The notes: a model not told the origin generated them from the sequence alone. A stretch of DNA of 64,000 nucleotides from Trichosphaerium sp. ATCC 40318 (GCA_038496445.1 JALMLS010000360.1:1-64000), one strand, 5' to 3'; counted from the first letter of the stretch, positions 2,143 to 59,483 are shown. Translations and numbers: made by a program.

Positions 2143-5100
2143 ATGACAGAATCACAAAGTGACGCCAATACCAATATTGATGTTGTTGATGACTATGAAA
2201 AGGCAGCTTTAATTTATGCAGGTAACATGATATGATGAGATACAACATGTACATACCTTACTCTACTATTTAGCATACAAAGGATACAATGAAGTTGTAT
2301 CAATGTTAATTAATGCCAACGCCAATATTGATGCTGTTGGTGAATATGGAAAGACAGCTTTAATGATTGCAGGTAACATGATATGATGAGATATAACATG
2401 TACATACCTTACTCTACTATTTAGCACAAAAAGGACACAATGAAGTTGTATCAACATTACTCAACGCCAATGCCAATATTCATGCTGTTGATAGAGATGG
2501 AAATACAGCTTTAATTTATGCAGGTAACATGATATGATGAGATATAACATGTACATACCTTACTCTACTATTTAGCACAAGAAGGACACAATGAAGTTGT
2601 ATCAACATTACTCAACGCCAATGCCAATATTGATGTTGTTGATAAAAATGAAAATACAGCTTTAATTTATGCAGGTAACATGATATGATGAGATATAACA
2701 TGTACATACCTTACTCTACTATTTAGCACAAGAAGAACACAATGAAGTTGTATCAACATTACTCAACGCCAATGCCAATATTGATGCTGTTGATAAATAT
2801 GGAAATACAGCTTTAATGATTGCAGGTAACATGATATGATGAGATACAACATGTACATACCTTACTCTACTATTTAGCACACAGCGGGTACAATGAAGTT
2901 GTATCAACATTACTCAACGCCAATGCCAATATTGATGCTGTTGATAAATATGGAAATACAGCTTTAATTTATGCAGGTAACATGATATGATGAGATATAA
3001 CATGTACATACCTTACTCTACTATTTAGCAAAAAAAGAACACAACAAAGTTGTATCAACATTACTCAACGCCAATGCCAATATTGATGTTGTTGATAAAT
3101 ATGGAAATACAGCTTTAATTTATGCAGGTAACATGATATGATGAGATATAACATGTACATACCTTACTCTACTATTTAGCAAAAAAAGAACACAATGAAG
3201 TTGTATCAACATTACTCAACGCCAATGCCAATATTGATGCTGGTGATAAAGATGGAAAGACAGCTTTAATTTATGCAGGTAACATGATATGATGAGATAC
3301 AACATGTACATACCTCACTCTACTATTTAGCACAAGAACGACACAATGAAGTTGTATCAATGTTAATTAATGCCAACACCAATATTGATGCTGTTGATAA
3401 ATATGGAAAGACAGCTTTAATTTATGCAGGTAACATGATATGATGAGATACAACATGTACATACCTTACTCTACTATTTAGCATACAAAGGATACAATGA
3501 AGTTGTATCAATGTTAATTAATGCCAACGCCAATATTGATGCTGTTGATAAATATGGAAATACAGCTTTAATGATTGCAGGTAACATGATATGATGAGAT
3601 ATAACATGTACATACCTTACTCTACTATTTAGCACAAGAAGGACATAATGAAGTTGTATCAACATTACTCAATGTCAATGCCAATATTCATGCTGTTGAT
3701 AAAGATGGAAACACAGTTTTACATTTTTCAGGTTACATCAAAAGAAATACTACAAGTTTAGCTTATGTTACTATTTAGCACAAAGAGGAAATAATGAAAT
3801 TATACCAATATTACTTAAAGCACATTTAAATAAGAACGCTGGTGATGAAAATAGAAACAATGTTGATTTAGGTACTGTTGCAATTTCACACTTGTAACCC
3901 TATTTGTTTGAAACGAACAATAGTTAACAGTTGGGTTTTAGTTATATCACCAGATAAGAAAAAGTGGCAAGATTTTCTTTTATTGTTATTTAAACAAGTG
4001 ATATCAAATGCTCCAGCATCTGTTGAAGCGTTTGTAACTTTTTTAAAATACTGTCCAAGTGGTAAACAATGCCATGCACTGTGGAAATCTTGTTCATCCT
4101 TTATGTCCTCCACAAACAGTGACAGATTGGAAATGCAAATGACACAATACAACAAAGCATACTTCGAGCAGTGGAAACAAGATCTTACACATCCTAAAAA
4201 ATGGCTTCGGTACTTGGTATGCTACTTTTGAAATGCTTTACTTGTTTTAATTATTACAACCTTCAGCCAACGCGTTCTTATTTTAAACTGGCAATGGAAA
4301 AGGGCATTTGTTATTTAATTTGTTCTGTGTGCAATCCCAAAGTTGCTTTGTCTGCAGTACGAATCCACAAACCACATGTAAACTTTATAACTGTTTGCTT
4401 TTTACTAGAACTTCTGGAAACAAGATGGAGAATTAATGCGAGGCATCTTGTTTGATATGCCCAATGATGCCTGGAGCAACACCGATCAAATTGACTACTT
4501 TGAAGATATCACTACAGGTATCAAGGTCACTGTTTTGCTGCAAAAACTAAAGTACCACAAAGGAATTAAGGCTGTAAACACGCGGGAGTTAAATCGGAGG
4601 TTGCATTTTGCAAATAATTGGGACAGATCTAACAGCACGTGCGTTCAAACTTATTACCATTTAGGTGGTTTTTTCAGTTTATTTTAAAAAGGGGCATTGA
4701 TTTAAAGGCGACTGACTACAGGACACTGAATCTGCTTGATACAACTGACAAAGTGGCTGTAAGAGAATTCAACATCCTCAAACAACAGATGTCCAAAATG
4801 CACGGCTATGACCAATACGATATTGTTGAAGCGACTCTTGTTTACAATGATATCTTGAATGACAACTTTGGACAATTCAACAACATACTACAACACAGAC
4901 ATCAGTACTCTATTATAATTACCCTGTTTTGATGTGTCTAAGTATGTACTTGTAGAGGACTTCCCAACTTGTTTAAAAAACAAAATTGGAAAAATGGCAT
5001 ACATAAAAAGTACAAAGAGAGTGTTTACAAACAACACAATTCCACACCAATGCAAAAATATTCAAGTACCAATAACGAGGACGCTTCAAAAGAAGAGGTA

Positions 5101-6508
5101 ATGTTTGTTAAAAAAAGCTATTTGTACTAACCTACGTTTAGTCACCAGTGATATTGATGGCTCATGGTACAAGTGAAGAAGCAGCTTACAATATTGTAAA
5201 AGCTGGTTTTGGAACTGTGAGTGCTTTAGATGCTGGTTACTATGGTCAAGGGATATACTTCACAGTACGCGATAATAATGTAACACTATATTCATTTCTT
5301 TCACAACAGCGGAGTATAAAATATGCGTGTTCTTATGATAAGGGAGGAAAGAAAGAGAAAACACTTATTTTGAGTCTTGTCACTCCTGGCAATGTATATC
5401 CTGTAAGTATCAATTTTATTGTCGTATCTAATTTGCAAAAAGGTACACCCAAAAGACAAGTTAAGAGGACAGCCAATAAAACCAGGCTACCAAAGTCATT
5501 TTGCATTGGTAGATAGCTTAGGTAGAGTTCTCAAAGAAAATAAACTTGCCAACGCGGTATACGATGAGCTTGTTGTTGCACAAGGTACAGGAGCAACTAC
5601 CAAAAAATTGTATTAACTTGATTTTGCAATCAGATTCTCAAGCTGTTGCTCGTTACATCATCAAAGTGAAAGATAATCAAATCAAAAAACGAATGAAAAC
5701 AAAAAAACCCAAGAAAGGTGGTAAAAAGACAAAGAAACAAAACAAAGAAGAAAATGAAGGTTCAGATGATGATCTCTCTGACTCTGATGATGATAATTTT
5801 ATTTCTAACCGGTAAGACATCATCCTTTTATTTAACCTCATATTGTTGCACAGAAAACTATGGGCTGCCCATGTGGACTCAACTGATGACCAGCAATCAA
5901 CTAGCAATGATGTATATCTCGACATAGAATTACAAAAAGCAAACCAGGAGATGAACAAACTAAAGAAGAGCAATGCGAATATGAAGGAACTTCTTGAGAA
6001 TTTACAGCAAACCAAAACAAACCAACAACATTATAATGCAAAGTTAGAGCAAGACAAATCAATCAAGCAACGACGCATCATCAAGTTGACAGAAACCGTC
6101 AATAATCTAAAGCAAGACAATAAAGTCAAAATAGCAGAAAACAATGCCAACCTAAAGCGAGACAATGTCAGCCTAACAGAAAGTGTCAATAACCTACAGC
6201 AAGACAACTCAACCAAGCAACAACACATCACCAACCTAACAGAAAGTGTCAACAACCTACAGCAAGACAATGTCAAGTTGATAGAAAGTGTTAATGACCT
6301 GAAGGAAGACAACGTCAAATTAACAGAAACCAATGCCATCATTAAAGAAAGTGTCAACAACCTGAAGAAAGATAACGTCAACGTATCCAAAAGCAACGCC
6401 AACCTGGAGCAAGATAACGTCAACATAGAAAAAAGCTTAAATAGCCTACAAGAGAGAAACGCCATTCTACTTGCCAAAATAGCCCAACTTGAAAATACAA
6501 ACAAGTAG
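2143..6508 (+). CDS. Multi-exon protein: ankyrin repeats + unknown middle domain + PARP-like ADP-ribosyltransferase (H-Y-E) + acidic/Lys linker + coiled coil (ANK-ART copy 1)
   Basis: ATG at 2143 (MTESQSDANTNIDVVDDYEKAALIYA) splices in phase 1 through ten 99-nt ankyrin exons (e.g. AQKGHNEVVSTLLNANANIHAVDRDGNTALIYA) and a capping exon (3779-3871). Later exons read ILMAHGTSEEAAYNIVKAGFGTVSALDAGYYGQGIYFT / RSIKYACSY...LILSLVTPGNVYP / ...GYQSHFALVD...AVYDELVVAQ / DSQAVARYIIKV, which are PARP-fold motifs. The last exon encodes a heptad coiled coil ending at TAG 6506-6508. The start codon is inferred. Confidence 0.85.
2222..3731 (+). repeat. Tandem array of 10 x 151 bp units (52-nt intron + 99-nt ankyrin exon)
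   Basis: The intron GTAACATGATATGATGAGATAYAACATGTACATACCTTACTCTACTATTTAG starts at 2222, 2373, 2524, 2675, 2826, 2977, 3128, 3279, 3430 and 3581, an exact 151-bp period. Confidence 0.97.
6080..6460 (+). repeat. Imperfect coding repeats (LTESVNNLQQDN-like, multiples of 7 aa) in the ANK-ART C-terminal coiled coil
   Basis: ACAGAAAGTGTCAA(T/C)AACCTACAGCAAGACAA-like units recur within ORF 5843-6508. Confidence 0.75.
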
Positions 6509-6782
6509 CTGTTACAATTAATTGGAGATTATGGTGGTACTTAGGTCGTTTGAGGTACAGAACACCTATAGCACTATCTCTCCTACATATTTTCGACACG
6601 CACGTTAGAGCTCTACAGTCAACAGCGATAGTTAGTTTTTGTATGCCAATATTAATACAAATGCTTGTCATAAATAAATAGTTTTTGTCCATTCAAGACG
6701 TGTTAATTTTTCCATACATCGATATAGAGATGAATTCAAGGTTCCTAAAAAAAATTTCGTAATAGTAGTTTACACCCTGTAG

Positions 6783-7146
6783 TAACGCCCTTCCGTTATG
6801 AATGAATAATTTGAATATTCAAATACAGCCTACATTCACAAATATTCACGACTAAAAAAATTCATTCATTATACATGCACACAGTAAAAGGCCGAAAATT
6901 GTGCAATTTGATGGCTGATTTTGACTGGATTTGTGGGTTTTGGTGTTCTGTTGACTATTCCGATTCGGTTTTCAAATGCAACTTGTTGAATCTATCCATG
7001 GAACATCGTTAGGTGCTACAAACCAAAAGCTCCTCAACATCCTGACTCACCAAACGCCCATGAATATTCATGAATGAATATTAATGAATATGGCTTACGG
7101 GACAATGAATATGAATATTGCTTGTATTCATAACGGAAGGGCGTTA
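6783..7146. mobile_element. Non-autonomous DNA transposon (MITE), hAT-like, 364 bp
   Basis: Terminal inverted repeats TAACGCCCTTCCGTTATGAAT (from 6783) and ATTCATAACGGAAGGGCGTTA (to 7146). The element is flanked by an 8-bp direct repeat CCCTGTAG (6775-6782 and 7147-7154) and has subterminal GAATA/TATTC repeats. An 8-bp TSD is characteristic of hAT elements. Confidence 0.88.
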
Positions 7147-7601
7147 CCCTGTAGTGACACTTATAAAACTTGTATGGATTATGGTAGGATATTTTGGGAT
7201 AACTATCCTGTCTATTGGCTTACTTTGTTGCTTTCGATGAATTGGTTGCTATGAGGACATTTTTAGAGCCAATATACGGTGGTGTTGCATAAGCTTTCGT
7301 CAATGACGGATGACTAAGTTAACGCTCCATTTAGATTTATTACTGATGATAACGGTATCACGTGGGCAGTTGCAGGTGCTTGGATCTTCTTTTTCCAGAT
7401 GGTAGCAAACAGCATGTACTTTTTTTTGTAGTTTTAGATTAGATATACATTTGCAAGTCCCGCTGCGATTGTAGGAAAAATTAATGGTATTTCATTCTGT
7501 CTTGGTGCTATATTAAAACTTTGGCGCCTTCTGTAATGGGATCTATATTTGAATGGAGCCAAACAAATGGTTTTGGTTTTCGCTTGAAAAAACGCGTCTT
7601 G

Positions 7602-7893
7602 ACGAAACACGTGCGTTTATCTCGCGGTAGAAAATACAGAAAAAAATAGGAATTGTAACATTTATGCAAACACAGTCAAGTTCAGTTCTGATTTTTTCCA
7701 CAACAGATCTACATGTCAATACGCGTATTTTGTATTTTGAAACTGACACAAGATTTGTAAACATTCCTCGTTTTTGGCTCAAAAAAACCACAAAGAAGTC
7801 CTCATATCTGGTTTGAAAAATCGATTTTTGATCTGATTCTTTACACACTAATGCGACATGTATATGTGCGTATAAAACTACAATAAAAATATT
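7602..7893 (+). repeat. Dispersed ~290-bp non-coding repeat, copy A
   Basis: Near-identical direct copy at 16297-16587 (ACGAAACACGTGCGTTTATCTCGCGGTAGAAAATACAG...CAATAAAAATATT). Confidence 0.92.
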
Positions 7894-9179
7894 GTCCAAA
7901 ACACATTCAAAAACAGCAGAATGAACAAATTTTTGACTTACAAACATAATGTTAGCGTATTACAAGGAGCCTCATATTGTACGTACCCAAGCAACACTGG
8001 GAAGAAAACCGAAAAATGTTTCTTTTTACCATTAGTGTAAGGCACGTAGCGCTGTTGGTTAGTCAACACTTTCGGTTTGGATTAAATGTTAACTCTAGGC
8101 GAATGAAGCAAATAACCAAAGCGAAGGGTACAAGGGTTGCTATTGCTACGTGAACATGTCATCACCAGTGTATACTACTCATTAAGGTTTAGACAATGAA
8201 TTGTTGGAAGCGTGGTTGCTATAAAGATCATAGGCACAAGTCATGTCAAAAAAAAAGTTGTTGCAAAAATACTGATGTGTAGTGGTTGTTAGCGCTCAAT
8301 ACTAGTAACGCAATATATTGGGTATCCGCCGTGGAAGGCAATGAAAAGACTGCATGTCCGCTTGATCAATTACAAAGTAACCACAAAGAAACAAGACATT
8401 ACCAAACCTCAACAAAAAAATAGGAACAAAGGGGTGACGCCTATGATACGATGTAGGGTAAAAGCGTTCTTTCCATCAATAACAACTGCAGACTCAATTT
8501 TTTTCTATACAACGCCTTGTAGGCACTCTGTTGATCTTCTACGTCGTAGACAAAATAACAGAAAAAAAAGTGTTGTAGACATGTTCTTTGGAGTAGATAG
8601 CGCATCGTGGTGCGTAAGGAGCCCGTCGGCCGTTTTTATGCCGCAGTGTTAGTTCTGTTAACCTCAAAACACAAAAATTTAAATAGACATAGCCTACTCT
8701 GATAATCTAAAGTGTTACAACGAAACCAGTGGAAGATAGAAAATACAAGACAAAAAAAATCTATCTCGACATGTGATCAAACAAAAACAAATGGTTACCA
8801 CGTTCTGCCTGGCGTAAAAACCTCAGCAAATTCGTTGTGTTGTTCCCACTTCTCGTTATGATAATGTTATAATAATACCGCGTTGGCTGTCGGGTTAAAA
8901 AATAGTCCGCGAAAACAAAGCGTTCTACATTACTACAAACTACCAAGAAAATAGGTATTGCCATCCAAAGGGTTTTTCTTTGTTTTCACAACTGTATTTT
9001 GAAAAACCGGTTCGCACTTGTTTCGCTCTGTCTCTGTACGCTTTTTTGATGATTCCTGAGCGACATCTCGTCAAATCACTTGCTAGCTTCACAATTAACG
9101 CTGTACTACTGAAATCTTAGCTACCTCGCTATGGAGTTATACTTACACAGTGTTACATAACGCTAGCGACTCAAAACCA

Positions 9180-14430: not shown

Positions 14431-16296
14431 TGGTTGGGAAAAAGTGGCAAATGTAGATCCAGCCACTTGTCAGATGATTGCTCTTGTTCAAAACAATTAT
14501 CTACAGGCGCATGCGCTCACAAAGACATGTGACTATCTTAAAATAACACTTATGCAATGTCCGTCTAATTAAGTTCAGAAATAAAAACTACTTCATTATT
14601 TACGCAATGATCACAAGACAAAATTGACGAAGAGACAGCAACAACGCTTTAATCTCCTCAACGATATAAAACTAAATTCCAAATGGAAGAGATGTATTTA
14701 CGTACACAGAGATAAACAGTGTACCCTATTTCAGAACAAGCAAACCAAGCAATTAAATCTTATATAGCGTTCCCAAATAAACCTCACACTGACCTAGGTT
14801 TATACAGCCCTAACGACCGTAGCAAACAACCAGCATTGATTAACGAGACATGAATCTTTAAAGACAAGCAATTTAAAAAACAATTCCAAACTAGCAGATA
14901 CTAAAATACCTTACATTAAAACCAGAGGATACGAGAGGAGAGACTGTGCCCATATGTATTAACATGGAGAAACCACGGGTTTGCTACAACATAACTAGAT
15001 GTTAGCTCATATATGACATACAAAGAAAAGAGAATAACGAAAGGCTTGCAGTAAAGATTTACAAAACTACTTTTTTATCATGTATCTATATACCGTTCAT
15101 TTTATTCATCAATCCATTATTTGAAGAACTACAACACTCCAAATGTGGCTACGTAATAGGTTGTACATAATGTCTGTATTAGCGTATGCTAATGATGTCA
15201 AATTGTGCTGAAAACTACGATAAATAACATGATTAAACTATTTGACATTGTCAAAACGTTTGCCAAATTCTGTTAACAAATCTACCAAGTTGGAAGCAAT
15301 TTTAGAGTGCCAGCCAAAATTGTTGTCCATGTAATCAACCAACTACTCCTAGCCAAGCAACATTTGTCTTGTCATCAATTGCCATACCATGAAAAACAGT
15401 GGACAAATGGAAGGGTCAATTCTAAAACATACAGAAAATTGTAAGTCCATCGAAGACTAAAGGTCATAGACGGTATAGTCACAAAGTTGGAGCTAAACCA
15501 TATCTGTATTAAATATTTGCAAACTGGTCGAGTGGCAATACTATACAATGTCCTTAACTATGATACAAACTCACTCATGCTTGCGACCAAAGAAGATAGA
15601 CTGCGTAATGCAGAAATCTTCAATACCCAAGTAATACAAAGCGCGATATCAAACTAACCGCAGTAGTAGGTTGTGGATCACAAACAATGGCAATTTTTGA
15701 ATACCTGGGCAGACATAAATAGCTGCAACAAAACATTATTTAAACACCATATAGTGTCCAGATGAGAACAGAAGATAGATAGATACACCGTGCTTGAATT
15801 AAGATCTAATCGAATAAACTAAACAAGCAAACTCTAGGATATGTAACAAAATCAAGTTCATTAAATATTCTGCTGTGTCTCGAGTAATAACAATATTGGT
15901 TCTTCAATTGTATCTAGTGAGTCACAAAGTCGACGTAGTTTAATAGGATAAGTTTATTTATGTATTCACCATCTTATTTTCCACTAGAGAAATTAAAGAA
16001 GAGCATGGCTGAACTTCGAAATTTTTTGTTGCTCAGGCCTATAAGAATTTCGTACATGACTTACTGCATAAACTTAAGCGCGATTTTTTTCCACAATACA
16101 CTAAGATATCGGTTTGAGTCTTTTTACTTGCTGAAATGAACGCGACATTGTAGTTCGTTTTTGGCACAAAAAAACCAGAAAAGAAGTCATAATTTCTGGC
16201 TTACCAATCCAACTTCGACTCTGATTCTTTACACACAAATCCAATATGTATGTGCACATATAAACATACCAAAAATTTGTTTGTCGCTCAAGTTTT

Positions 16297-16587
16297 ACGA
16301 AACACGTGCGTTTATCTCGCGGTAGAAAATACAGAAAAAAATAGGAATTGTAACATTTATGGCAAACACGATCAAGTTCAGTTCTGATTTTTTCCACAAC
16401 AGATCTACATGTCAATACGCGTATTTTGTATTTTGAAACTGACAAGATTTGTAAACATTCCTCGTTTTTGGCTCAAAAAAGCCATAAAGAAGTCCTCATA
16501 TCTGGCTTGAAAAATCGATTTTTGATCTGATTCTTTACACACTAATGCGACATGTATATGTGCGTATAAAACCACAATAAAAATATT
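16297..16587 (+). repeat. Dispersed ~290-bp non-coding repeat, copy B, preceded by a diverged partial sub-repeat at ~16155-16280
   Basis: Near-identical to 7602-7893. The upstream segment TTTTTGGCACAAAAAAACCAGAAAAGAAGTC...CTGATTCTTTACACAC resembles the 3' half of the unit. Confidence 0.92.
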
Positions 16588-18594: not shown

Positions 18595-19230
18595 TTCTTT
18601 TTAGAGATACCTTGTCCAACAACAACCTTGTCGTATACTGCATTGGTGACTTTATCTTCAGTGACAGCTCTACCCTTATGATCAATGTAATGACTTCGGT
18701 AGCCTTGTTTTATAGGCCTTCCTATTAAATCCTCCGTTGGTTTTACGTGTGTAATCATTAATACATAATACACAATTCTTGTTTGTGTACAGGGTATATG
18801 TTGCCAGGAGTAATGCCTCAAAATAACCGGTTTTTTCTTTTTGTCCTCTAGTATCGTATGCATTTTCGAGATCTTCTGATGGTCACTTTGTCATTTGTAT
18901 CAAGGAGATTCAGTGTTCTGTTGTCCCTTTTTTGTAAAATAAATAAACTACAACCAATTGTTGCTTTGAACGCACGTAGATCTATTACTTGCTCAAACTA
19001 CATGAGAAAAACGTCTTGGCTCCTTTTTTTGTATGGTGAAAGTAACAACATTAATTTCCTTTCAACAGTGCTTTCAGGTAAAATTGCAATGGTGCCTGAA
19101 AAAGTGTTCTATCAACAGCATTGATATTGACAATGGCATTGATTACATTGATATAATCTCATTGTGTAGAGACGCCCATTATTGTCGCTAGTAATTATAT
19201 TACGCCAACTGAAAGCAAGGGATTCTGTGA
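18595..19230 (-). pseudogene. Internally deleted ANK-ART pseudogene (copy 3)
   Basis: The minus strand gives, in order: ankyrin remnants (HNEIISM*INAIVNINAVDR), the middle-domain piece DNRTLNLLDTNDKV, then ITPGNIYP-intron-VKPTEDLIGRPIKQGYRSHYIDHKGRAVTEDKVTNAVYDKVVVGQ. The order is colinear with copy 1. The HGT/YFT segment is deleted and the catalytic E is replaced by K. Confidence 0.85.
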
Positions 19231-23776: not shown

Positions 23777-25144
23777 ATGGGTGACGACGGCGACAAAGTT
23801 AAAAAGCTTACGAAGGAAATAGAGTCCCTCAAAAACCAGATAGAGAAAAACCGCACTGAAAAGAACGACACAGATCGTACGTTTTTTAAAATACCACAAA
23901 CGCATTTTTGTGCAGTCTTTGCCTTTTACCCGTTTTTTAATACGTTTGGACCCAATGTTGCCTCTTTAAACTAACCCGACATAGTAAAGCAATATGTTGC
24001 CAATGAGAGCATCAACTTGCCTAGTGGGGACAAACTAAAAGCGCGCCGTACATTGAAGGGCCATCTTGCAAAGATTTACTCTATGCAGTGGTCTACCGAT
24101 AATATTCATCTTGTTTCGGCTTCACAAGATGCCAAGCTTCTTGTTTGGGATGCGCTTACCACCAACAAACTCCACTGTATTCCTGTACACACCTCATGGA
24201 TTATGACTTGCGCATACGCTCCTTCTGGCAGTTTTGTTGCCTGCGGTGGTTTAGATAACCTCTGCTCTATCTATAACCTCAGATCACGCGATATTCCTAT
24301 TCGTGCCTGTCGTCAATTGTCCGCACACACTGGTTACCTCAGTTGCTGTCGATTCCTCGATGATAAACAAATCATTACAAGTTCTGGTGATGCTACTTGC
24401 ATCTTGTGGGATATTGAAGCCGGCTCTAAGATTAAGGAGTTCTCCGACCACTCTGGAGATGTTATGAGGTATGCGCGCTGCCATACACAATAATTTAACT
24501 CTGTTTTATTTTAAATCTTTTTTTGTGAACAAAACTGTTTTTATATGGGTATTTTACGGACTCACATAACCTTTAGCGTTTCTATTTCCCCTAATCAGAA
24601 ATATTTCATTTCTGGTTCTATTGACGCCACAGCCAAACTTTGGGATTTACGTTCCGGCAAATGCACCCAAACATTCAAGGGACACGAGAGTGATATCAAC
24701 ACTGTCCAGTACGTTTTTTTTTCGTAAATTGCAAAAACGTTTTGGTTTAATAAATACCTAACTTTCTTTTTTTAGATACTTCCCAACCGGCTATACCTTT
24801 GCCACTGGATCTGATGACTCCACCTGCCGATTGTTCGATATCCGTGCTGACCGCGAGCTCATGACTTACTCACACGACAGCATTCTTTGCGGTATCACAT
24901 CTATTGATTTCTCACTCTCCGGCCGTTACTTATTTGCTGGTTACGATGACTTTAACTGCAACATGTGGGACACCCTCACAGGTGAGAGAGTACACACTCT
25001 TGAAGGTCACGATAACCGCGTTTCGTGCCTCGGTGTTTCTCCTGACGGTATGGCTCTCTGCACAGGTTCTTGGGATCATCTTCTCGTACGTTACGACTAA
25101 ACATTTCAGTTACTAATTTTTTTCCGTAGCGAGTTTGGGCATAA
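23777..25144 (+). CDS. gpbA: Heterotrimeric G-protein beta subunit (WD40)
   Basis: [16 protein letters not shown]...[14 protein letters not shown]...[18 protein letters not shown]...[31 protein letters not shown]. Five exons. Very similar to Dictyostelium GpbA as I recall it. Confidence 0.97.
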
Positions 25145-37469: not shown

Positions 37470-39299
37470 GGTTAAAAAACCAGCTCTTTAAAGTGACTGT
37501 TCTTCGATTTCAATTTTGGGGCAAACTGCTTTTTTTTTTTTTTTTGGGAATTCTTAATTGGGTGCACCCAAAACCGACGATCGGTTTCGCTTTATTCAAG
37601 ATACTGAACGCGCTCTTAGTTTGTATGTCCAGTTTTAAAGTACCTTGCTCTTCTCCAATGTGTAAGGTGAAAGAAAAGATTGCTACTCCGTTTACTCTTG
37701 TTCCAAAGGTAACGCTGGCGATTGCTACCGTTTTTGTACCGTTTAGCTCAAGTGACGTCATTAGCGAACCCCATTCTTGGTTAAGAGCGACATAGTCGTC
37801 CATTGGAGATTCAAAGGCTAGTACCAGCAGTTTAGTTACAATAATGTTATACGCTCACTATCAATTAAGAACAGCTTGAAATACGCGATTTTACGCATTT
37901 ATAGAGCCGTTTAACAAGTTGATTAGAGTACTCGTACCCAAAGTAAAAAGTAGAATCGATAATACCGATAATAGACGTATAACCATTCTTGTTGATGCTA
38001 TGACAATATGTAAGATGCTTTTTGCGTAAATCTAGCTAGATCCAAAGTTGGTGACTTAACTATCCAAATATGTTCATATTACATACGTATGTATACCTCT
38101 TAATACCACGAATTCATTGGGAAATGACCACTATATGTTGTCATGATCCTTGAGTTTTTAGGCCATCTCCCACTAAACTTATGGATATGTCTAAAACGAG
38201 AGCATCTCAAAGGCTACGTGAGTGTTATTCTAGTGTTAAATCGAGTAGGAGTGATTGTAACTTTGTCTCTTACACGCAAGCACCCTGACACAACAGTTCC
38301 AGATATCACAGTACCTGAGATTTGCATTGTAAAGGATGATGGTTTGTTTACTTCATGCTCATATTCAGTCGACATAGATATGATGATATGCATCATAATA
38401 GTCTCAGAAATCCGCGGATATTGAGAAAGCTCAAACATTCTTTGAGCTGCAGAAACAACCAGTACAAACATTAAGCTTTAACAAGTGATACAAGCATTGG
38501 ATGCATGTCCCTAATAGCAGTAGTCACCTATACAAACTAAGTCAATAATGTAGTCCATTATCACAAAAACATACCTTGTCAACACGTGACAAAAACCATT
38601 TCGTAAAAGAAAGAAAACAAAACTGTTGTTGTATAAATTGTTGGCATTTTATCTTATATGAGTAGATAGTGTTGAACGTACATGATAGAATAGTGGGTAG
38701 AGTAGGGCTGTGGCAACGACCAGAACTCGTCAACATACTCCTATATTGGGATGATGCCTTTCTGTTCTTGCTGTGAACAATCTATGTTGTGATCTGATCT
38801 TGTAAAGCGGATACATAGTTCGCACAGCTATTCACTGTATCAGGTGAAGCTAAGGTTGTCATTGCACAGTACTGGCCGAACACTGAGAACAAAAAGGCCT
38901 CGTCCAGGTCAATTCCACTAGCTACTGTTGCCATCCTAGTCAGTGTAAAACTTTCACTTATCACGTGATACAAATATATAAACCTAGCTGTACGTGGGTA
39001 TGTGAGATTGTTGAATGTGAAACCAAACATTGATATTAAACTTACAGTGTTACTTGAATCGCTTACGTAACTATTGAAAAATGGTTTCATTTGTTATAAC
39101 CGACTCAATTGTTTAGTATAAAAGGACACAATAAAATGTTTTCTATCTAAGATTATCGAAGTCAACGACTCAAACAAGTGAGCTGCTACAAATTTAACTA
39201 TCACATAAGATTGTTGTATGTAAAACGAAACATTTAGCAATTCCTACCACGAGCGTTTCTATACTGTTGTTTATTGTTCTGCTCAGTAACACGATTTAG

Positions 39300-42200
39300 T
39301 TAATTCTTCCCAGTTTCAAGACGAGCTATTTTATCCAGTACTTCAGCAAGCCTTGCTTGTAAGTTATTGTTGGTTTCTTGTAACTCAGCAATGTATTTTT
39401 TCTGATTTGCAATACTATGGGATAAGTTTCTGTTGGCTTGCTCCAGATCCTCATTACTTGGTTTTTGTTCGGCATTGAGATTATTGTTTGACTCTTCTTC
39501 ATCAGGCTCTACATGAGAAGCCCATAGTTTTCTTGTATTGCCAATTAGCAAAAAGAATAGAAGTGTAATTCTTACCGGCTACTAATGAAGTTGTCGTCAT
39601 CAGAATTGTATACGTCATCTGAGTCATCTGAATTATTACCAGACACAACCTGTTCATTTGGTTTATTTATGTTTATATTCTTCTTCATGGCTCTATCGCT
39701 TTTCTTTGGCTCGATGTCTTTCCTTTTCGGTACCACTTTGATGATGTAACGAGCAATGGTTTGATTATCTGAACTCATCATAAGTAAGAACTAAATAAAT
39801 ACCATTTGTTTCTTGATTGTACCTTGTGCAACAACAAGCTCATCGTACACTGCTGTTTTTAGTTTCCCTTCTTTCAGAGGTTTACCTGAGTGGTCTACCA
39901 ACGCGTAATGGCTTTGGTATCCTGGCTTTATTGGGTTCCCTCTTAAGACGTCATTTGAATGGACCTTAAGATAAAAAAGTTAACGTGGCTATATATGTTG
40001 ATTACTTACAGGATATGTATTGCCAGGCGTGACAAAACTTAGGATAAGGGTATTTTCTCCTTTTCCTGAGGCATCATATGAACAAGCGTATTTGATACTC
40101 CTCTGATATTCAAAGAAAAATGTGAGCACGTGCATAATTTAAACGGTTTTGTTTAGCGTACAGTGAAGTAAATGCCTTGACCATAGTAACCAGCATCCAA
40201 AGAGCTCACAGTCCCAAAACCAGCTGCTACAATACTGTACGCAGCTTCTTCACTAGCTCCATGTACCATCAATATCACTGGTAACTAAAAACAAGATTGT
40301 AAGCACGATTTGAGCAGGACTACTTACATCTACTGCTGAAGCGTCATCAGCATCAGTTGATCCATTTTGTGGAGCGAGTGCCTCATACTTTTGGTAAACA
40401 GCATCTCTGTAATCCTTATTAATATTATCTTCCTTCCATTCCTGCTTTTTAAACAAGTTTGGTAGATCCCTTTAAATAGAGGTTAGAATTACAAGGGCAA
40501 TCAATACCATAATTTGTTCTTTTGGATATCGTACTGATGTCTGTATTTCAATAGTTTGTTGGCTCTTCCAAAGGTTTCAGTCAAGATATCGTTACAAACT
40601 AGAGTTGCTTCTACAAGATTGTATTTGTTGAAACCATGCATTGTTGACAATTCTTGTTTTAGGATGTTTAATTCTCTTACAGCTACTTTATCATTTGTAT
40701 CAAGAAGGTTCAGTGTTCTGTAATGAGTCGCATTTGATACAAACCCACTTAAAAAAAAATTACATAGTTAAAAATAAATACAACAATATTGAACGCACGT
40801 GACTTTAGATCTGTCCCAATTGTATGAGTAATTCAGTCGTGGATTTATATCCCATCTGCGTTTGCTTTTTAATCCTTACAGTTTGTTGTAAACAAAACTA
40901 GGTACAAAACACTAACTTCCTACCTGTAGTGCATTTGGTAGCTTCTAAATCGTCATATTGCTCTGAATTATCACCCCACATGTCTTTAGGAAGGTCGTAA
41001 AGAATACCTTTCATTAATTCTCCGTCCCCTTTCCAAAAATCCTGAGGAGAAAAAAAAAACAAGTGTTAGGAAGATATTGTTGAATGATTTTCTGGTTTGT
41101 GTGTTATTATCAGGTAACGTACTTGCGAAAATGCAAGCTTGGGATCACATATTGTACAAATTAAATGACAAATACCTTTTACCATTGCCAGTTCAAAATA
41201 AGAACGTGTTGGCTGGGCATGTATTAGTAGGTACTGTATATTCTTAGCATACCAATTGTTGCAGCCATGCATTAATATCTGCCGCTGTTAACTCTCCATC
41301 TCTGCTTGATTTATGTTTGCTTTTGAAGTATGAACAAGAGAGCCATAGATCACGTGATTGTTGAAAATATGGTAGGAGTTTTAAAACATTAATGAACAAC
41401 TCAACAGACCCAGATTCTTGTAAGTGAATCATGTTGATTAACAGTACTCGAAAAAAGTCTTGCCAAAGTTTTGTAGACGGCAAAATGCCGCCAGTTTCTT
41501 TTAGTAAAGTGAAGAATAATGAAGTCATTATTCCTGAATCTAAACACAAAATAAGTCCTCGGTCAATTTACAAACAAGTGACAAACACACCATGATTAAG
41601 AGTTTCTTCATCAAAGCTGATAGGTGCAATATTCGCCATTGCTTTGAGTAGCATCACAACTGCATTCAAGCCCGCATGCGCTGTAGAAAGAAGTGAGTTA
41701 CAGTCTATATTAATATCTTGTTACATCACCTGCATAAAGTAGAGGTGTCTCTCCTTTATTATTAGCTATGTCAATAGTGGCGTTTGCTTTTATTAACATA
41801 GACACAACTTTATTGTTATATTCTTTAACTACAGCAATGTTAGTTCTTGTAGACTATTTACGACTGTCACATTACCTGCATGAAATAAAGCTGTATTTCC
41901 GTCATTATCAGCTGCGTCAACGTTTGCATTTCCTGCGATCAAGATTGACATCACCTCACAACTACTCCTAAGACTTAAACGTGCTAAAAATAAAGTGAGT
42001 TTCAAAAAAAAGTTTTGTCTATCGTGTGATACAAAGGTACCTGCATAGATCAAAGGAGTCTCTCCCTCGTTGTTGGTGGCATCAATATTGGCATTTGCTT
42101 TTACCAGCATTGATAAAACTTTAAGGTGAGAATAGAGGACTAAAGGAAAATATCAGTATCAGCCGCTAGTTTTTATTCTGTTGTGCCACCTGCTGTATGT

Positions 42201-44185
42201 AAAGCTGTATTTCCTTCTTTATCCTTTGCGTCGATATTTGCATTCGCTTGAATTAACATTGAAACCCTTTCTTTATATCCCTGTTGTACTACAGGCAACA
42301 TAAGTTAACCGAAATTAATTGGATAAGAACTTGACATGTTACCTGATAGAATTAAGGGCGTATTTCCATATGAATCAACAACTTCAGTATTTGCTTTTGC
42401 TGCTAGCAACATTGAAATGTCAAAAACATCTTCACTATACTGCACTTAAAGGAAACGTGAGTTAGAATTTATGTGGGTTAAGCACAGTTACCTGCAAAAT
42501 ATAAAGCTGTTTCACCTTGTTTTGTGGCAGCGTTTACGTTTGCTTTTGCTTCAATTAACATTGCCACAGCTTCTGAGTTTTTATTACTTGCTTTATTGTA
42601 GGGTGAGTGACAGCTGTTGTACAGACTGTTGTGGTATTACCTGCGTAAAGTAAAGCTGTGTTTCCGTATTTATCAACTCCAATTTCGGTGTTTGCGCCTG
42701 CTCCGATTAGCATTGAAATGACTTTGTTGTTACTACATTCCACTATAGGTTGTCAATCAATTGTTTTGAATGGTATTTGAAGTGACGTTACCTGCATAAA
42801 GTAAAGCTGTCTTGCCATCTTTATCAACAACATCAACATTCGCTTTTACATTTAATAACAGTGAACAAATTTCAGTAAACTTATCACCGTTGTTCTCAGC
42901 TAAAGTAAAAAATGAGAACGTCATTTAGAATGTAGAATTTGAGGAATATTTGAGGAATATTTGAGGAATGTACGTGTACGGAATTACTACTCTACGCCCA
43001 ACCACAAAGTATAAAAAGGTAAGGTTTTTTCTCGCTATACGCTGTAATGCTAGTTTTGTTGGTGGCTGTTGGTACTGTCGCGTGAGTGCAAAAGAAGATT
43101 TTTACTAATTAAATGCACTGAAGGATGCGAAAATACTATAGGTCTTTGTGTGACTTCATAAGAGCAAGCATTTTTTTTTACAAACAAATAAAATAAGTGT
43201 AAAATACTTTTTGTAGCACGTTACCTGCATAAAGTAAAGCTGTTTTGCCATATTTTTTATCAGCAACTTCTATATTTGCGTTTACTTTTATTAACACGGA
43301 AACAATACTGGTGTTACCGTATTGAGCTAAAAGAAAGTGTGACTTGTTTAAGTTAAGAAAAACTTGTGACTTTCACCTGCACAAAGTAAAGCTGTCTCTC
43401 CTCGTTTGTTAGTAGCATCAACATTGGCCTTTGCTGCAATCAACATTGACACAATTTCTACTGTACATGGTCTGCATCCGTACACTAAGGCAATTGAGCA
43501 AGCTGCAGTTATGACACAACAATATTACCTGTATTAAGTAAAACTGAGTTTTCGTCTTTATCAACAGCATTGACGTCAGCATCGGCTTTGATTAGTAAGG
43601 ATACAGTTTCTTTTTGTTCTAAATGGCGATGTGAGTTGCACATTGTATCTGTGATATTATTACCTGCATACATCAAAGCTGTCCATCCATCTTCATCAAC
43701 AGCATTAACATTTGCATTGGCTTTGATTAGTATTGATACAACTTCATTGTGTCCATTTTGTGCTAATCAATGATGAGTTAACGTTGTATCTCACCTGATA
43801 TGTTACCCGCCCACATCAAAGGTGTCAATTTGCGGTTATCAACAACATCAATATTTGCATTTGCGTTTAGTAATGCAGACACAATTAAACTGTATCCTTC
43901 TTTGGCTAACAAAATACAAAAAAATAAGTTTACTTATTCGCAATTACGTCACGTGTGACGCTGATATTACCTGCACAATGTAAAGCTGTTTCTCCAGTTT
44001 TAATATCAAGAGTATCAATATCACTATTCGAATCCGCCTTTAGTAAAGTTGACGAAACCATTTTAATATCCCCAGTACGCACTACAGTCAAGCCATGAGA
44101 AAGAATTAATGTATTTCCTGCTGTTACCTGCGTGGAGTAAATCTGTCGCATTATTTGGGTTTTCTTTGCCTGGTGTTTCCGCCAT
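39300..44185 (-). CDS. ANK-ART copy 2: ~15 single-exon ankyrin repeats + middle domain + PARP-like ART + short coiled coil
   Basis: ATG at 44185 (MAETPGKENPNNATDLLHA), then phase-1 ankyrin exons such as AQNGHNEVVSILIKANANVNAVDEDGWTALMYA separated by divergent introns. The ART exons read VILMVHGASEEAAYSIVAAGFGTVSSLDAGYYGQGIYFT / RSIKYACSY / ...GYQSHYALVD...AVYDELVVAQ, with the same intron positions as copy 1. Stop at 39300-39302. Confidence 0.85.
42938..42969 (+). repeat. Three copies of an 11-bp unit (TTTGAGGAATA) in the long intron of ANK-ART copy 2
   Basis: Read directly from the sequence. Confidence 0.8.
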
Positions 44186-44970: not shown

Positions 44971-45561
44971 CTACTTAAAGGGCAATTTATTCATTTCAAA
45001 GACCTTTACACACTTTCCATTTCGATAGAACGAATGAATATCTATAACTCCATCAGGATACCACCTTCTATAATCTCCATCTGGCTCGCCATTGACACAT
45101 TCGAAAAACTCATTAACACTACCATTCGAATGCCATCTCTTAAACTCGCCTTCTCGTAAACCATTCTTGTAAGTACATTGACAAGACATGTTACCATTAC
45201 GATGCCAAGAAGTATATTCTCCATCCAATTTCCCATTTTTATAGGAACAACAAGTTTTCTTGGCAATAGCATGTTCTTTATTCCATAGTTTACCGTCTCT
45301 ATGCGTAACATACCATGTCTCATGCCTACCATGTAATACACCATTTTGAAAGCACGTGCGTGACTTTAAAACTCGATAATACGAGAATTTAAGGAAAACA
45401 CCATTCTTTTCTAGTATATAGTCATATCTTGATGTTGTTGCTGTTTGGTGGTTTAATAACGGCCATTTTAGGTATACTTCCGTGTCTAGTGAGATTATCA
45501 TGTGCTGAAGCTCTAAAGGTATTGCCAAAATGATACTTTCACGTGAGTTCTTTAGTCCCAT
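44971..45561 (-). CDS. Intronless protein with an F-box-like N-terminus and MORN-variant (YwqK-type) repeats
   Basis: IILAIPLELQHMII (F-box-like LPxE) followed by YKNGKLDGEYTSWHRNGNMSCQCTYKNGLREGEFKRWHSNG repeats. Single 196-aa ORF. Confidence 0.8.
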   Translation of the reverse strand: MGLKNSRESIILAIPLELQHMIISLDTEVYLKWPLLNHQTATTSRYDYILEKNGVFLKFSYYRVLKSRTCFQNGVLHGRHETWYVTHRDGKLWNKEHAIAKKTCCSYKNGKLDGEYTSWHRNGNMSCQCTYKNGLREGEFKRWHSNGSVNEFFECVNGEPDGDYRRWYPDGVIDIHSFYRNGKCVKVFEMNKLPFK

Positions 45562-53100: not shown

Positions 53101-56100
53101 TGAGTTGTTCACACCTCCTTTTGCTTATTTTACTTTAAGTTTTTCCAATCTGGCACAGCTTCATTAGCTTCTATAACAGAACAAATACCTCAATTGAAGA
53201 AGTCTATTGATAATACGCTTAAAATTGTTACAACTTCAGTTGACTTTATTCGATTTTCTAAGATGACCAAAAGCGATATTCAAACTCCCTTCAGCATTGT
53301 TGCTGTACTTGAAAAAGTCATAGAGGGTAAAATAGATAAGAAGAATATTGATTTATTCTATACAATTGATAATGACGTACCTACAACATTACTTGGAAGT
53401 GCTAGTCATACAACTTACATTCTATCTCAACTTATTGATAATGCATTAACATTCACACATCACGGAAAAGTATGGATTAGAGTTAAAATGAGAGACAGTA
53501 GTTTTGTAGAGTTTCATGTACGTGATACTGGAACTGGTATTAATAAGGCACATCACGATCAGATATTTCATCAGTTCTTTACGACAAGGGAGCCTGGATG
53601 CGGTATAGTTTTTTCTTGGTCAATTTTCCTATTTTTTTCTTACTTACACTGATAGGTGTTGGTCTTGGTTTGGCTACTTGTAGATCAGTTTCTCGTCTTT
53701 TTAAGAATGGTTCAGTAGCACTATTAAAGTCTACGCATACTCTCGCTCAAGAAAATACAGACAGCAAGCTTGGATCTCATTTTTGCTTTTCGTAAGTTTA
53801 TTTTCAAAACACTTATATCTAATTAATAACACCTATTTTTAGCGCTCAGTATACTTTTAAATCTCCAGTAGAGACTTTTGCCGATTGTGCACAATGGAAT
53901 TCTTTACCAAGTTTACGCGTGTTGGTTGTTCAGAGGTGTGAAGAACTAGGCCAGGAGCTTTGCAATGTTTTGAAACAACTTGGCGCTGCCGAAGCTAATT
54001 TTGAAAGTAACCCTGAGTCAGCATATAAACAACTTGTGGTACGTCATGAAAAATACTGTCCTACAAAGTAAAGTTAATTTTTTCGAGCTAATTAAATTTA
54101 GAATGGTTGTGGTGAAGAAGGCGCTCCTTATACTCATCTATTGCTTGACATGTTATTAGAAAGTGATGCGTACGTTTGTTCTAAAATTCAAGAACCTTAA
54201 TGACTTATTATTACCATCACTCTGACCTACGTTTGTCTACTACAGCTGAAAACACGGCCTCTATTCTATTTACTTTAGACTAATAATTTTTTTTTAGTAA
54301 AAATGTTGTGAATGGTGCAGCGTATGCACGTCGTGTTAAGCTCAATCCAAAATTGAAAAATATAAAGATTGTTTTAACTCCGAATCCAAAGGATGTACCT
54401 TCTATGCAACCAGAGCATGTAGATGTTATAGCAGCAAAACCTATTTCTAGAGATAAATTGAGCTCTTTGATTGGTAAAAAGAAGAATAGCGCTCTAATCG
54501 ATGGTACGTTTCTTATTCTTATTTTTTTCCGAGAAAATTTATTTATTCGTTTTCAACTGGTATTTCGCAGTTTTTATGACAATTCATCGTATCATATCTC
54601 CGGCTATATTAGCGTCATGAGGAAAAAATAACATAAGATGAATCGTTATGTTCAAAAGCGAATGAAGGGTTTTTGTTCACCTGTTATTGAACTTTTGCAG
54701 TTTTTCATTGCAAGCAATTATTTATTGTGCTACTGTTTTTTTATGGTATTGATTTAATTCATTTGCTTAGGCTCTATCAAATCACAAATGTCTTTATCAG
54801 TACTTGTTGCTGAAGATAGTCCAACAAATATTATTGGTGCGTAACTTTGTAACAACAGTGAAAGCATTTTGGTTTTCTCTTTTTTTTCTTTTGGCTTTAA
54901 AGTTATGTACTTACAAGCAATTAGTACTCACAAAGACGTTGACCAATATGGGTCATCAGTACGTTTTATAATAATATATCAAAAGTAACATACTCTGTAG
55001 ATCCCATTGTGTGAAGGACGGTAAAGAAGTTCTTGATGAATATAAAAAAAATCACTCAAAATATCATATTGTTCTTATGGATTGCCTCATGCCTGTGATG
55101 GATGGATGGGAAGCTACTCAAAAGATAAGAGAATGGGAGAAAAGTCAAGGATTAGAACATAAGCCAATAGTCGCATTATCAGCTGCTTCTGATCCTGAAG
55201 ACATTGAAAGAGCTAATGAAGTTGGTATGGACCATTTTCTTATAAAGCCAGCAAAAAAACTTGAGCTGGAGAACTTATTCGCAACTGTTATTGGAAACTA
55301 TAAAGAAAAGAAAGATGCAGATGTATCTGTAAAAGAAGGCCCTCTATGTAAAGTTCTATGGGCTGATTCTAATACTGTCAGGTAGCGATCTTTTATCATA
55401 AGTTGTTTTATGAAAAATAGTTCCCTTTGTTCCTTTCAAACGTCTTTACTTCTCTTATCTGATATCAAATATTTGCGTGCTAAATACTTCTTTTTAATAG
55501 CTTTAAATTGGTGTCAATGATGTTACCTAACTTTGAGTTTGATTATGCAGAATCTGGAACAGAAGTAAGTTGTTTACAGATATCTTACAGTGCAGTTTCT
55601 AACCTTTTATAGTTGGTGAATACAGTAAAAGCACGATACAACCATTATGATGTCATTGTTATCGTAAGAACTCTCCTATGTTTAATTGTGTTGCCAAAAA
55701 CTCTAAAACCAGTGACATGGCTTGTCATGCATCCTTTCGTTTTTTTTTCAAAATGGAAAATTACGCCTTTCAGTATTGGTTTCTCGTTCATATTCCATCC
55801 CGCTTTGCTATGCTTGTTGACCTCAATATGGCCCCTTCTAACATTTTTTAAAGGCAGAACATATTGCTACTATGACAGGACGTCGATGTCTTGTAGACAT
55901 TCGTCGCTATGAAAAAGATGAAGGCATGCAATTCCAAAAGCCTGTCATTGGCTTTGCTACATCGACACACAATGCTGAAATGTGGTACCGATCTGGATGT
56001 AAATGTGTCATGGTTAAACCTATTGATTTGCCTCAACTAAAGACACACCTCGAGAGTCATATCCACGTATGTCGGACTTGTTTCCCGTCATCAAACCCAA

Positions 56101-58583: not shown

Positions 58584-59483
58584 TTATTTCTCACAAACAA
58601 CTTTCAAAGGTGACTTTAACAGTCGGTTACCATCAATCCACATACACTCTTCCTTAAAAAATCCATTCCTATGCCATAGTCTAGTCTTGCCATGCCGTTT
58701 ACCATCAGCCCACATGCTGCGTTCCTTAAGTTGTCCGTTATAATACCATTTCATTCTTTTACCAAACAGTTTACCATCAACTAAAAAGCATTGTTTCAAA
58801 AGTTGTCCACTCTCAAGCCAATATTTGAGTTTGCCATGTCGTTTACCATCAATCCACATACACTGCTCCTTAAGTTGTCCATTTTCATGCCATGATTTAC
58901 ACTCACCATGTTTGTTATCATCAATCCACATACACTGGTCCTTAAGTTGTCCGCTTGCATACCATGTCTTACTCTCACCATGTAGTTTATTATCAATCCA
59001 CATGCCCTGCTCTTCAAGTTGACCATTTTTATACCATCCCCTAGATTCACCATGCTGTTTATCATTAGAAAATGTCCACTGTTCCTTAAGTTGTCCGCTT
59101 GCATACCATGTCTTACTCTCACCATGTAGTTTATTATCAATCCACATGCCCTGCTCTTCAAGTTGCCCATTTTTATACCATCCCCTAGATTCACCATGCT
59201 GTTTATCATTAGAAAATGTCCACTGTTCCTTAAGTTGTCCGTTCTCATACCATCCCTTAGCTTCTCCATGCTTTTTACCATCAACCCACATCCACTGTTG
59301 CTTAATTGTTCCACTTTTATACCACTGTATCCATGGTCCTTTCTTTTTTAATGCCTCATTAAAATGTGTATTGATTGCTGCTCTTTTTGATAGTGTATGA
59401 AACTTTGTAAATGCTTCCATGTTGAAAGTACAAATATACTGTTGAAGTTCACGTGGGATATCTAATAAACTCACTGAGTCCAA
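58584..59483 (-). CDS. Intronless F-box-like + MORN-variant repeat protein, copy 2 (no in-frame ATG before the F-box)
   Basis: SLLDIPRELQQYIC followed by ~10 repeats of 24 aa (WYxNGQLKEQxMWIDGKxHGExxx). The ORF opens on TTG. Confidence 0.75.
   Translation of the reverse strand: MDSVSLLDIPRELQQYICTFNMEAFTKFHTLSKRAAINTHFNEALKKKGPWIQWYKSGTIKQQWMWVDGKKHGEAKGWYENGQLKEQWTFSNDKQHGESRGWYKNGQLEEQGMWIDNKLHGESKTWYASGQLKEQWTFSNDKQHGESRGWYKNGQLEEQGMWIDNKLHGESKTWYASGQLKDQCMWIDDNKHGECKSWHENGQLKEQCMWIDGKRHGKLKYWLESGQLLKQCFLVDGKLFGKRMKWYYNGQLKERSMWADGKRHGKTRLWHRNGFFKEECMWIDGNRLLKSPLKVVCEK
58939..59226 (-). repeat. Recent 144-bp tandem duplication (two MORN repeats)
   Basis: 58939-59082 and 59083-59226 are identical except for one synonymous change. 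Confidence 0.92.

Follow-up and report, generated by a model that had tools for sequence, protein, structure and literature searches.

In the 64,000 nucleotides (nt) of Trichosphaerium sp. ATCC 40318 that were analysed (GCA_038496445.1 JALMLS010000360.1:1-64000, the whole of this stretch being referred to here as the window), we found an intact gene at 2143-6508 on the plus strand that joins a tandem array of ankyrin repeats to a predicted PARP-type ADP-ribosyltransferase (ART) domain. On balance we consider it probable that this gene represents a lineage-specific ankyrin-PARP family, in which a young repeat array has been subject to selection for repeats that differ on their binding face amid concerted evolution of the repeat units. 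If the excess of replacement changes described below holds family-wide, this would be a clean case of exon-amplified binding-surface diversification outside plants, animals and brown algae, with the diversified surface coupled to an ADP-ribosylating enzyme instead of a cell-death domain, a GTPase or a kinase. The array moreover offers, on a small scale, a natural experiment in concerted evolution: its introns are 98.6% identical to one another, the adjoining exons 88%.

Gene structure and ankyrin exon array

The gene runs from an ATG at 2143 to a TAG at 6506-6508 and comprises 22 or 23 exons and about 1,085-1,100 codons, the coding length including the stop being 3303 nt with 22 exons or 3258 nt with 23. 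Every intron was of the GT-AG type and of 40-70 nt, and phase arithmetic carried out exon by exon, with each split codon translated singly, gave no internal stop across the 22-exon model; the 14/15, 15/16 and 18/19 junctions were set by comparison with two spliced relatives, P0001 and P0002. From the N-terminus onwards the gene encodes 11.5 ankyrin repeats, a helical region and a PARP-family ART domain bearing His, Tyr and Glu, after which come a charged linker and a long coiled coil. The twenty-third exon would result from a 45-nt stop-free, in-frame intron at 4518-4562, which is likely spliced because an intron falls at this residue in the paralog described below and in the transcript L004 too. 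This intron and the one at 5265-5309 are both exactly 45 nt long, stop-free and in frame, so that their retention would add 15 residues and leave the protein unbroken; gene callers read through the equivalent of the second one in the genomic contigs of distant relatives (P0003 and P0004).

Tandem Repeats Finder reported a period of 151 nt at 2162-3738, with 10.4 copies, 91% matches and no indels. Translation resolved the array into ten 99-nt exons, all of phase 1-1, each one holding a single ankyrin repeat and always splitting an Ala codon, and ten 52-nt introns, the first at 2222, which recur every 151 nt. The translations of single exons (32 residues) exceeded the Pfam cut-offs for Ank (21.6-23.5 bits, cut-off 21.1) and Ank_4 (24.5 bits, cut-off 22.7), with E-values of about 1e-4 to 3e-5. 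Of the 52-nt unit intron, the 47-nt intron before exon 12 has kept the ends alone. These results confirmed the sequence-only reading made earlier of this stretch, which had described ten 99-nt phase-1 exons, one for each repeat, separated by near-uniform 52-nt introns, and its lists of tetrapeptides at the end of helix 1, of hairpin variants and of LMIA/LIYA/LHFS endings were correct residue for residue. The three variable sites that it named were real, but variation was not confined to them, since the helix-2 core codons 11 and 13 (M/T and I/L) and codons 20-22 also vary recurrently. The introns were indeed more uniform than the exons. They differed by a T/C at intron position 22 and by a single T>C in the eighth intron, so that two of their 52 columns were variable as against 36 of the 99 exon columns (p = 3e-6), and the mean pairwise divergence was 0.014 for introns and 0.125 for exons.

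Two explanations for the intron itself were rejected. A structured or known RNA was discarded on finding no Rfam match in a search of the whole window and a folding of the 52-nt intron that was no better than that of shuffled sequences (z = -0.5), whereas an introner-type origin was discarded on the ground that introns occupy the identical phase-1 position in every repeat of the diverged paralog. A 19-base exon pattern used in a metagenome scan matched 80 contigs, once each and with no array, which was taken as chance; one of these contigs was labelled as human-gut metagenome. Single 99-nt exons encode many of the repeats of animal ankyrin genes.

The paralog (Table 1) shares the layout of one repeat per exon, but its repeat introns are unrelated to one another and range from 44 to 325 nt; within it, repeat exons were 64% identical and introns 60%, as compared with 54% for shuffled sequence. 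All ten focal exons were closest to the third repeat of the paralog (77-84 of 99 bases), and the introns flanking that repeat were the most similar to the 52-nt intron (0.69-0.71). The same exon-per-repeat layout with scrambled introns argues that the focal array is young and, as far as these comparisons tell, it is a young amplification of one ancestral intron-plus-exon unit that took place after the two genes separated. In the downstream part of the two genes the exons were 55-85% identical, whereas the introns had an identity of 0.58 as against 0.55 when shuffled, indicating that introns of the family are not generally constrained. The two intact copies and the relic of a further one lie within 40 kb.

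The 3' exons of the paralog were matched at 97-99% identity by the transcript L004 (protein P0002), from which the introns had been removed, so that transcription and splicing of the family are shown for a near-identical strain. A third family member was represented by L001, a transcript from the same transcriptome, in which seven ankyrin repeats precede the P0001 frame and are in frame. At 700-805 L001 has a retained intron, broken by a run of N, at the position of the focal exon 12/13 intron; its ankyrin introns have been spliced out. The last 69 nt of the focal gene region (window 6442-6510 versus L001 2511-2579) were 97% identical to L001, as compared with about 80-88% elsewhere; a short tract of gene conversion or constraint on the C-terminal end may account for this. 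With ten virtually identical introns and symmetrical exons, frame-preserving exon skipping might lead to many ankyrin isoforms.

Replacement changes and exchange among the repeat units

The ratio of replacement to synonymous differences per site (pN/pS), obtained by Nei-Gojobori counting, was 2.6 for the patches at the helix-1 end, the hairpin and the LMIA-type ending (5.8 without the terminal unit) and 0.4-0.5 for the remaining codons, indicating that the repeats are not freely drifting. Changes private to one unit amounted to 16 replacement, 4 synonymous and 1 intronic (exon versus intron, p = 0.001), the replacement changes being about 8-11 times denser than those in the introns. Among the five closest units (2, 3, 4, 6 and 7) we found 14 replacement and 1 synonymous variable columns and 2 variable positions in 104 flanking intron sites; with 3 changes in all 126 silent sites, the 14 replacement changes were about 8 times denser (p = 1.3e-4), and they lay mostly on the predicted binding face. 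When introns and synonymous sites together were taken as the yardstick, the replacement excess gave p = 1.3e-4 to 5e-6. A replacement rate above the neutral one, as expected from the diversifying selection proposed from the sequence, was thus significant only when introns were considered neutral, and not with synonymous sites alone, in spite of ratios of 2.6-5.8 at the patches. We infer that the introns can be used as a neutral yardstick, and the support for selection depends on it.

The variable sites had also been likened to those randomised in designed ankyrin repeat proteins (DARPins), and replacement changes were in fact concentrated at such positions of the hairpin and of helix 1. By an inferred alignment, variable codons 24, 25, 27, 32 and 2 correspond to positions 2, 3, 5, 10 and 13 of the ANK-N5C library, whose positions were chosen as high-entropy positions of natural repeats (PMC4308713). 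Unlike the library design, position 33 (codon 22) was almost invariant, and codons 4, 5, 11, 13, 20 and 21 varied too. Codon 3 is presumably position 14 of the DARPin scheme. At the six codons aligned with the classical randomised library positions, pN was 0.24.

The four-gamete test failed for 59 of 120 pairs of informative sites, with a minimum of 5 exchange events inside the 151-nt unit. The tandem amplification of the unit is clear, but the breakpoints fell inside exons, so that the mosaic is finer than whole exons, and the intron-mediated exon shuffling suggested by the sequence-only reading received no specific support. In units 1, 8 and 9, a mid-exon block differed from the other units at 6 of 24 bases, 3 of them silent, with no intermediates, and accounted for half of the synonymous signal; it resembled another repeat of the paralog (30 of 36 matches) and, from this likeness, looks like a short imported patch. 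The exact donor repeat for the variable patches was not identified in the paralog or in L001.

Several results weigh against selection for different binding faces, or limit the explanation of the gene as a whole. For the whole repeat pN/pS was only 1.13, and the replacement excess measured against synonymous sites alone gave p = 0.18-0.44 (0.18 in the five closest units). The synonymous divergence of the exons (0.11) was about 8 times that of the introns (0.014; p = 0.007 by columns), which is not explicable by selection at the protein level; either the introns have been specially homogenised or constrained or the exon variation has been imported, and both weaken the neutral yardstick. The variable positions tended to be the least constrained ones of the paralog (Spearman 0.52) and of L001 (0.38), as under mere relaxation, and in the older array of L001 pN/pS was 0.7-0.9 and the patches showed no excess. 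Because the ANK-N5C positions were picked for natural variability, the overlap with them is expected in any ankyrin array and is not evidence for a sensor. In addition, the gene was analysed exon by exon or via database relatives, and the fold and the Pfam scores above cut-off presented in the next section are those of the relatives. Finally, the focal gene's own transcript was not found in transcript and protein searches.

The last of these results would also be expected from a dead copy, but the frame is open through 22 exons with canonical splice sites, and the framework codons are constrained. Likewise, exactly periodic arrays of 1.5 kb are hard for short-read assembly and could be an artefact of it, but exon pairs differed at 3-22 sites, which makes every unit distinguishable, and the period is exact with no indels. 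We regard both the dead copy and the assembly artefact as very improbable.

Another explanation would be an ordinary young tandem exon duplication without selection for diversity, in which the introns have been homogenised by conversion centred on them, or are constrained by the needs of splicing a repetitive transcript, and the exon changes reflect relaxed constraint together with patches copied from other ankyrin repeats. The roughly 8-fold gap between synonymous exon sites and introns, the block of units 1, 8 and 9, the plentiful failures of the four-gamete test and the non-significant synonymous-only test would be in agreement with it, and the variable positions would be those that are generally unconstrained (see also PMC4308713). 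Nevertheless, this seems rather unlikely to us: introns of the family are otherwise unconstrained, the 52-nt intron has neither an unusual RNA structure nor an Rfam match, the framework codons are conserved, and the density of unit-private replacements is not explained by the import of old patches.

We hold, with moderate confidence, that the units are kept alike by concerted evolution and that replacements on the binding face have been retained or favoured. In the mechanism that we propose, the copies of the single ancestral intron-plus-exon unit, once amplified in tandem, have gone on swapping short patches; concerted evolution would hold the introns uniform, and the surface formed by the hairpin and helix 1 would gather replacement changes several times faster than silent ones.

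The predicted ADP-ribosyltransferase domain and its relatives

The triad codons of the ART domain were localised in exons 18-20 (His 5163-5165, Tyr 5256-5258 and Glu 5566-5568). A stop-free reference of 5142-5402, which spans the second 45-nt intron, matched PF00644 with E = 8e-5 and 22.7 bits; this is below the gathering cut-off of 26.7 because only part of the domain, two exons, was in the query. Using the same region as query, a HMMER scan of 1.84 billion representative proteins retrieved 363 matches at E up to 0.001 and 7 at E up to 1e-10. P0001 (590 aa) and P0002 (450 aa), both from a single JGI transcriptome sample (3300016894), were 87% and 86% identical to it and lacked exactly the 15 residues encoded by the 45-nt intron. 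Five relatives (P0001, P0002, P0006, P0007 and P0012) passed the PF00644 cut-off of 26.7 with 30.9-45.5 bits; two relatives 81-87% identical over 5142-5402 scored 30.9 and 36.5 bits.

P0001 alone gave no match when compared with the sequences of solved structures, and only profiles did. A profile of 74 relatives matched the solved domains of ZAP, PARP12, PARP10, PARP4 and PARP14 (E = 4e-8 to 1e-4), and with a two-sequence profile of the C-terminal half, Gly-Ile-Tyr-Phe and Asp-Glu-Leu-Val-Val were aligned with PARP4 motifs. The His-Gly-Thr of the family was aligned with PARP12; His and Tyr were matched in PARP12, and Tyr and Glu in PARP4. Among the 74 relatives the Tyr was invariant and the Glu was kept in at least 90%, whereas PARP10, PARP12 and ZAP are not known to have the catalytic Glu. 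When P0001 was modelled with AlphaFold2 using the alignment of 74 relatives, the predicted local distance difference test (pLDDT) was above 90 over most of residues 170-415; the confident ART region (pLDDT of about 90 or more) began near residue 170 and the Pfam PARP match at 188. The 50 best of 373 Foldseek matches of this model (E <= 0.001) were all PARP catalytic domains, the best ones having E of about 1e-9, a target-normalised template modelling score of up to 0.73 and an identity of about 15-17%. Taken together, these comparisons indicate that the catalytic domain encoded by the gene belongs to the PARP family and retains the His, Tyr and Glu. The fusion of ankyrin repeats to an ART domain with an H-Y-E triad, as claimed beforehand, was thus borne out by the triad codons, the profile alignments and the Pfam scores and fold of the relatives, HMM comparison and structure prediction on P0001 having given a PARP fold.

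No Pfam family was found at cut-off in a per-exon search of exons 13-17. Exons 13-15 and most of exon 16 have no assigned family, and residues 1-165 of P0001, which match this region, were helical with low model confidence. Exon 22 has short tandem repeats at 6228-6329; its matches to coiled-coil families were weak only and a protein search with it gave no match, and in the P0001 model its equivalent was a single long helix (residues 484-588). SAM, WGR and PRD domains were not found by Pfam in any exon, nor in P0001 or P0002 (SAM at E up to 1).

Besides P0005, a close relative of MMETSP origin, the nearest relatives with a species name were from Difflugia compressa and Copromyxa protea, both Amoebozoa; an amoebal setting, which had been assumed, is plausible, these two being its sole support. 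The PARP-like domain was also found at the C-terminal end of Roc-COR proteins (P0011, P0038, P0102 and P0135), in which it was sometimes duplicated. P0169 combines Roc-COR with a C-terminal SAM domain, and in P0042, from the same 90% cluster, COR and SAM only were detected. Other front ends were leucine-rich repeats (LRR) in P0063, ankyrin repeats and SH3 in P0085, and RCC1 in P0012, the sources of these relatives being metatranscriptomes and Amoebozoa. Such varied front ends suggest that the PARP-like domain is a reusable output module, which is equally compatible with a receptor-like role and with ordinary signalling. In the passages of the PARP survey that were consulted (PMC2964712) a Roc-COR-PARP architecture was not seen, and we met no description of this PARP-like domain family in two PARP survey papers. 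The distant genomic relatives L005 and L006 (46% G+C) share with the focal gene the intron inside the catalytic core, but neither a tandem array nor upstream ankyrin exons could be detected in them.

Tankyrases (PARP5a/5b, clade 4) are ankyrin-SAM-PARP proteins which, according to the survey, are found in animals only (Citarelli et al. 2010, PMC2964712). Like them, the focal protein has an N-terminal ankyrin array, a C-terminal His-Tyr-Glu PARP domain and a predicted oligomerisation module, and tankyrase catalytic domains were among the Foldseek matches of the P0001 model. Unlike them, it has no SAM domain and carries instead a coiled coil after the enzyme domain; its catalytic domain was no nearer to tankyrase than to PARP3, PARP4, PARP10 or PARP12, although Foldseek does not separate subfamilies, and the search with the 74-relative profile found no tankyrase at E up to 0.01. 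We therefore agree with the earlier view that this is not a tankyrase. The same survey describes a clade 1A of ankyrin-WGR-PRD-PARP proteins in Dictyostelium, fungi and Paramecium and concludes that ankyrin repeats were acquired by PARPs on more than one independent occasion (PMC2964712). The focal gene resembles clade 1A, as there described, in being a protist ankyrin-PARP fusion, but WGR and PRD were not found and the profile retrieved PARP12, ZAP, PARP10, PARP4 and PARP14, not PARP1-type domains. The focal family thus falls under neither the tankyrase nor the clade 1A definition, and it differs from PARP4, PARP10, PARP12 and ZAP in its accessory domains and in a structural identity of about 15-17%.

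The logic of tankyrase, in which targets are brought to the enzyme by the ankyrin repeats, is likely shared. By analogy with tankyrase and with the anatomy of ankyrin repeats, the solenoid would bind protein partners on its concave face, the ART domain would pass ADP-ribose from nicotinamide adenine dinucleotide (NAD+) to the bound partners or to itself, and the coiled coil would oligomerise the protein, where tankyrase uses its SAM domain.

The ROCO and NB-ARC-TPR genes of Ectocarpus have one repeat per exon, frame-preserving exons and positive selection on terminal branches at ligand-face sites (PMC3341825). The sequence-only reading had drawn a parallel with ROCO-LRR and NB-ARC-TPR genes, and the focal family shares with them symmetrical one-repeat exons, clustered copies and relics (PMC3341825; PMC11378527); a replacement excess at ligand-face positions would be a further likeness if introns count as neutral. 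Both the ten 99-nt exons of the focal array and the 14 exons of the paralog hold one repeat per phase 1-1 exon in the Ectocarpus style, and a further link with ROCO proteins is that relatives of the focal enzyme domain are fused to Roc-COR. The differences are the ankyrin repeat, the PARP-like output and the lineage, as well as exchange inside exons and not the relocation of whole exons, no inverted or intronic spare exons having been seen. The parallel is apt, and rests on one young array.

Since the Ectocarpus genes have been proposed as candidate receptors (PMC3341825), the focal family could also be one of innate-immune-type receptors, whose ankyrin surface would recognise pathogen molecules and switch on an NAD+-using ART effector. 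The young array's excess of replacement changes on its predicted binding face, the two copies and the relic clustered within 40 kb as in birth-and-death families, and the same ART domain behind Roc-COR, LRR, RCC1 or ankyrin, that is, a variable front with a constant output, would be in line with such receptors. The nearest relatives among solved sequences include ZAP and PARP12, which have an antiviral role. Nevertheless, we give this explanation a low probability: the gene has no signal peptide, death-fold or STAND module, the modularity of repeat plus enzyme is equally typical of ordinary signalling, the selection signal hinges on the neutrality of the introns, and no replacement excess was present in the older array of L001. 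Just as tentatively, the family could be part of a receptor-like superfamily of Amoebozoa and their allies, with a PARP-type ART output behind interchangeable ankyrin, LRR, RCC1 and Roc-COR modules, in which young arrays would be fast-evolving recognition surfaces.

Feature coordinates and other parts of the window

Table 1. Position of the exons of the ankyrin-PARP gene and of its relatives within the window
Feature	Position (nt)	Strand	Description
Exon 1	2143-2221	+	Start codon and truncated copy, 3' two-thirds of the repeat unit (translation; Tandem Repeats Finder array starts at 2162)
Ten intron-plus-exon units, 151 nt each	2222-3731	+	52-nt intron, then 99-nt phase-1 ankyrin exon
Exons 2-11	Ten of 99 nt, first at 2274, step 151	+	One ankyrin repeat each
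Exon 12	3779-3871	+	Diverged terminal half-repeat (helix pair) closing the ankyrin domain; no Pfam match alone
Exon 13	3942-4216	+	Helical region, no family match
Exon 14	4267-4356	+	Helical region, no family match
Exon 15	4409-4638	+	Helical region, no family match
Exon 16	4692-4904	+	Mostly no-family region; predicted PARP domain begins here
Exon 17	4956-5097	+	N-terminal part of the predicted PARP catalytic domain
Exon 18	5142-5264	+	Predicted PARP core; alone matches PF00644 positions 51-90
Exon 19	5310-5402	+	Predicted PARP core
Exon 20	5443-5584	+	Predicted PARP core, carries the triad Glu
Exon 21	5634-5811	+	Lysine-rich stretch, then acidic, serine-rich linker; no Pfam family
Exon 22	5854-6508	+	Coiled coil of ~215 residues with short internal repeats, then TAG
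Paralog	39298-44184	-	14 phase-1 ankyrin exons (90-111 nt) with one repeat each; downstream exons as in the focal gene
Relic of a further family copy	18612-19042	-	Pieces matching exons 13, 16, 19 and 20 only (tblastn)

Just 3' of the gene, 322 nt lie between the two arms (6782-6803 and 7126-7147) of a perfect inverted repeat of 22 nt, and this element looks like a miniature inverted-repeat transposable element. The frames at 7543-7947 and 16101-16445, both on the minus strand, have a near-identical peptide stretch in common, which suggests that a dispersed repeat, or what is left of a transposon, occurs twice in the window. Intronless MORN_2 repeat proteins are encoded on the minus strand at 58584-59483 and 44971-45561, the former being composed around a tandem repeat of 72/144 nt; in L005, too, the distant relative is adjoined by a MORN-like tandem repeat (6186-6513). 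An exact look-up of a neighbouring MORN protein and a protein search with a fucosyltransferase-like frame, also a neighbour of the gene, gave no match. By eye, 24017-24493 (+) resembles part of a G-protein beta-subunit (WD40) gene, and frames in 53194-57366 (+) are similar to a receiver domain and to the ATPase of a histidine kinase. Another frame of this last region resembles an adenylate/guanylate cyclase, with a weak Pfam match just under cut-off, and these frames could belong to a single large signalling gene.

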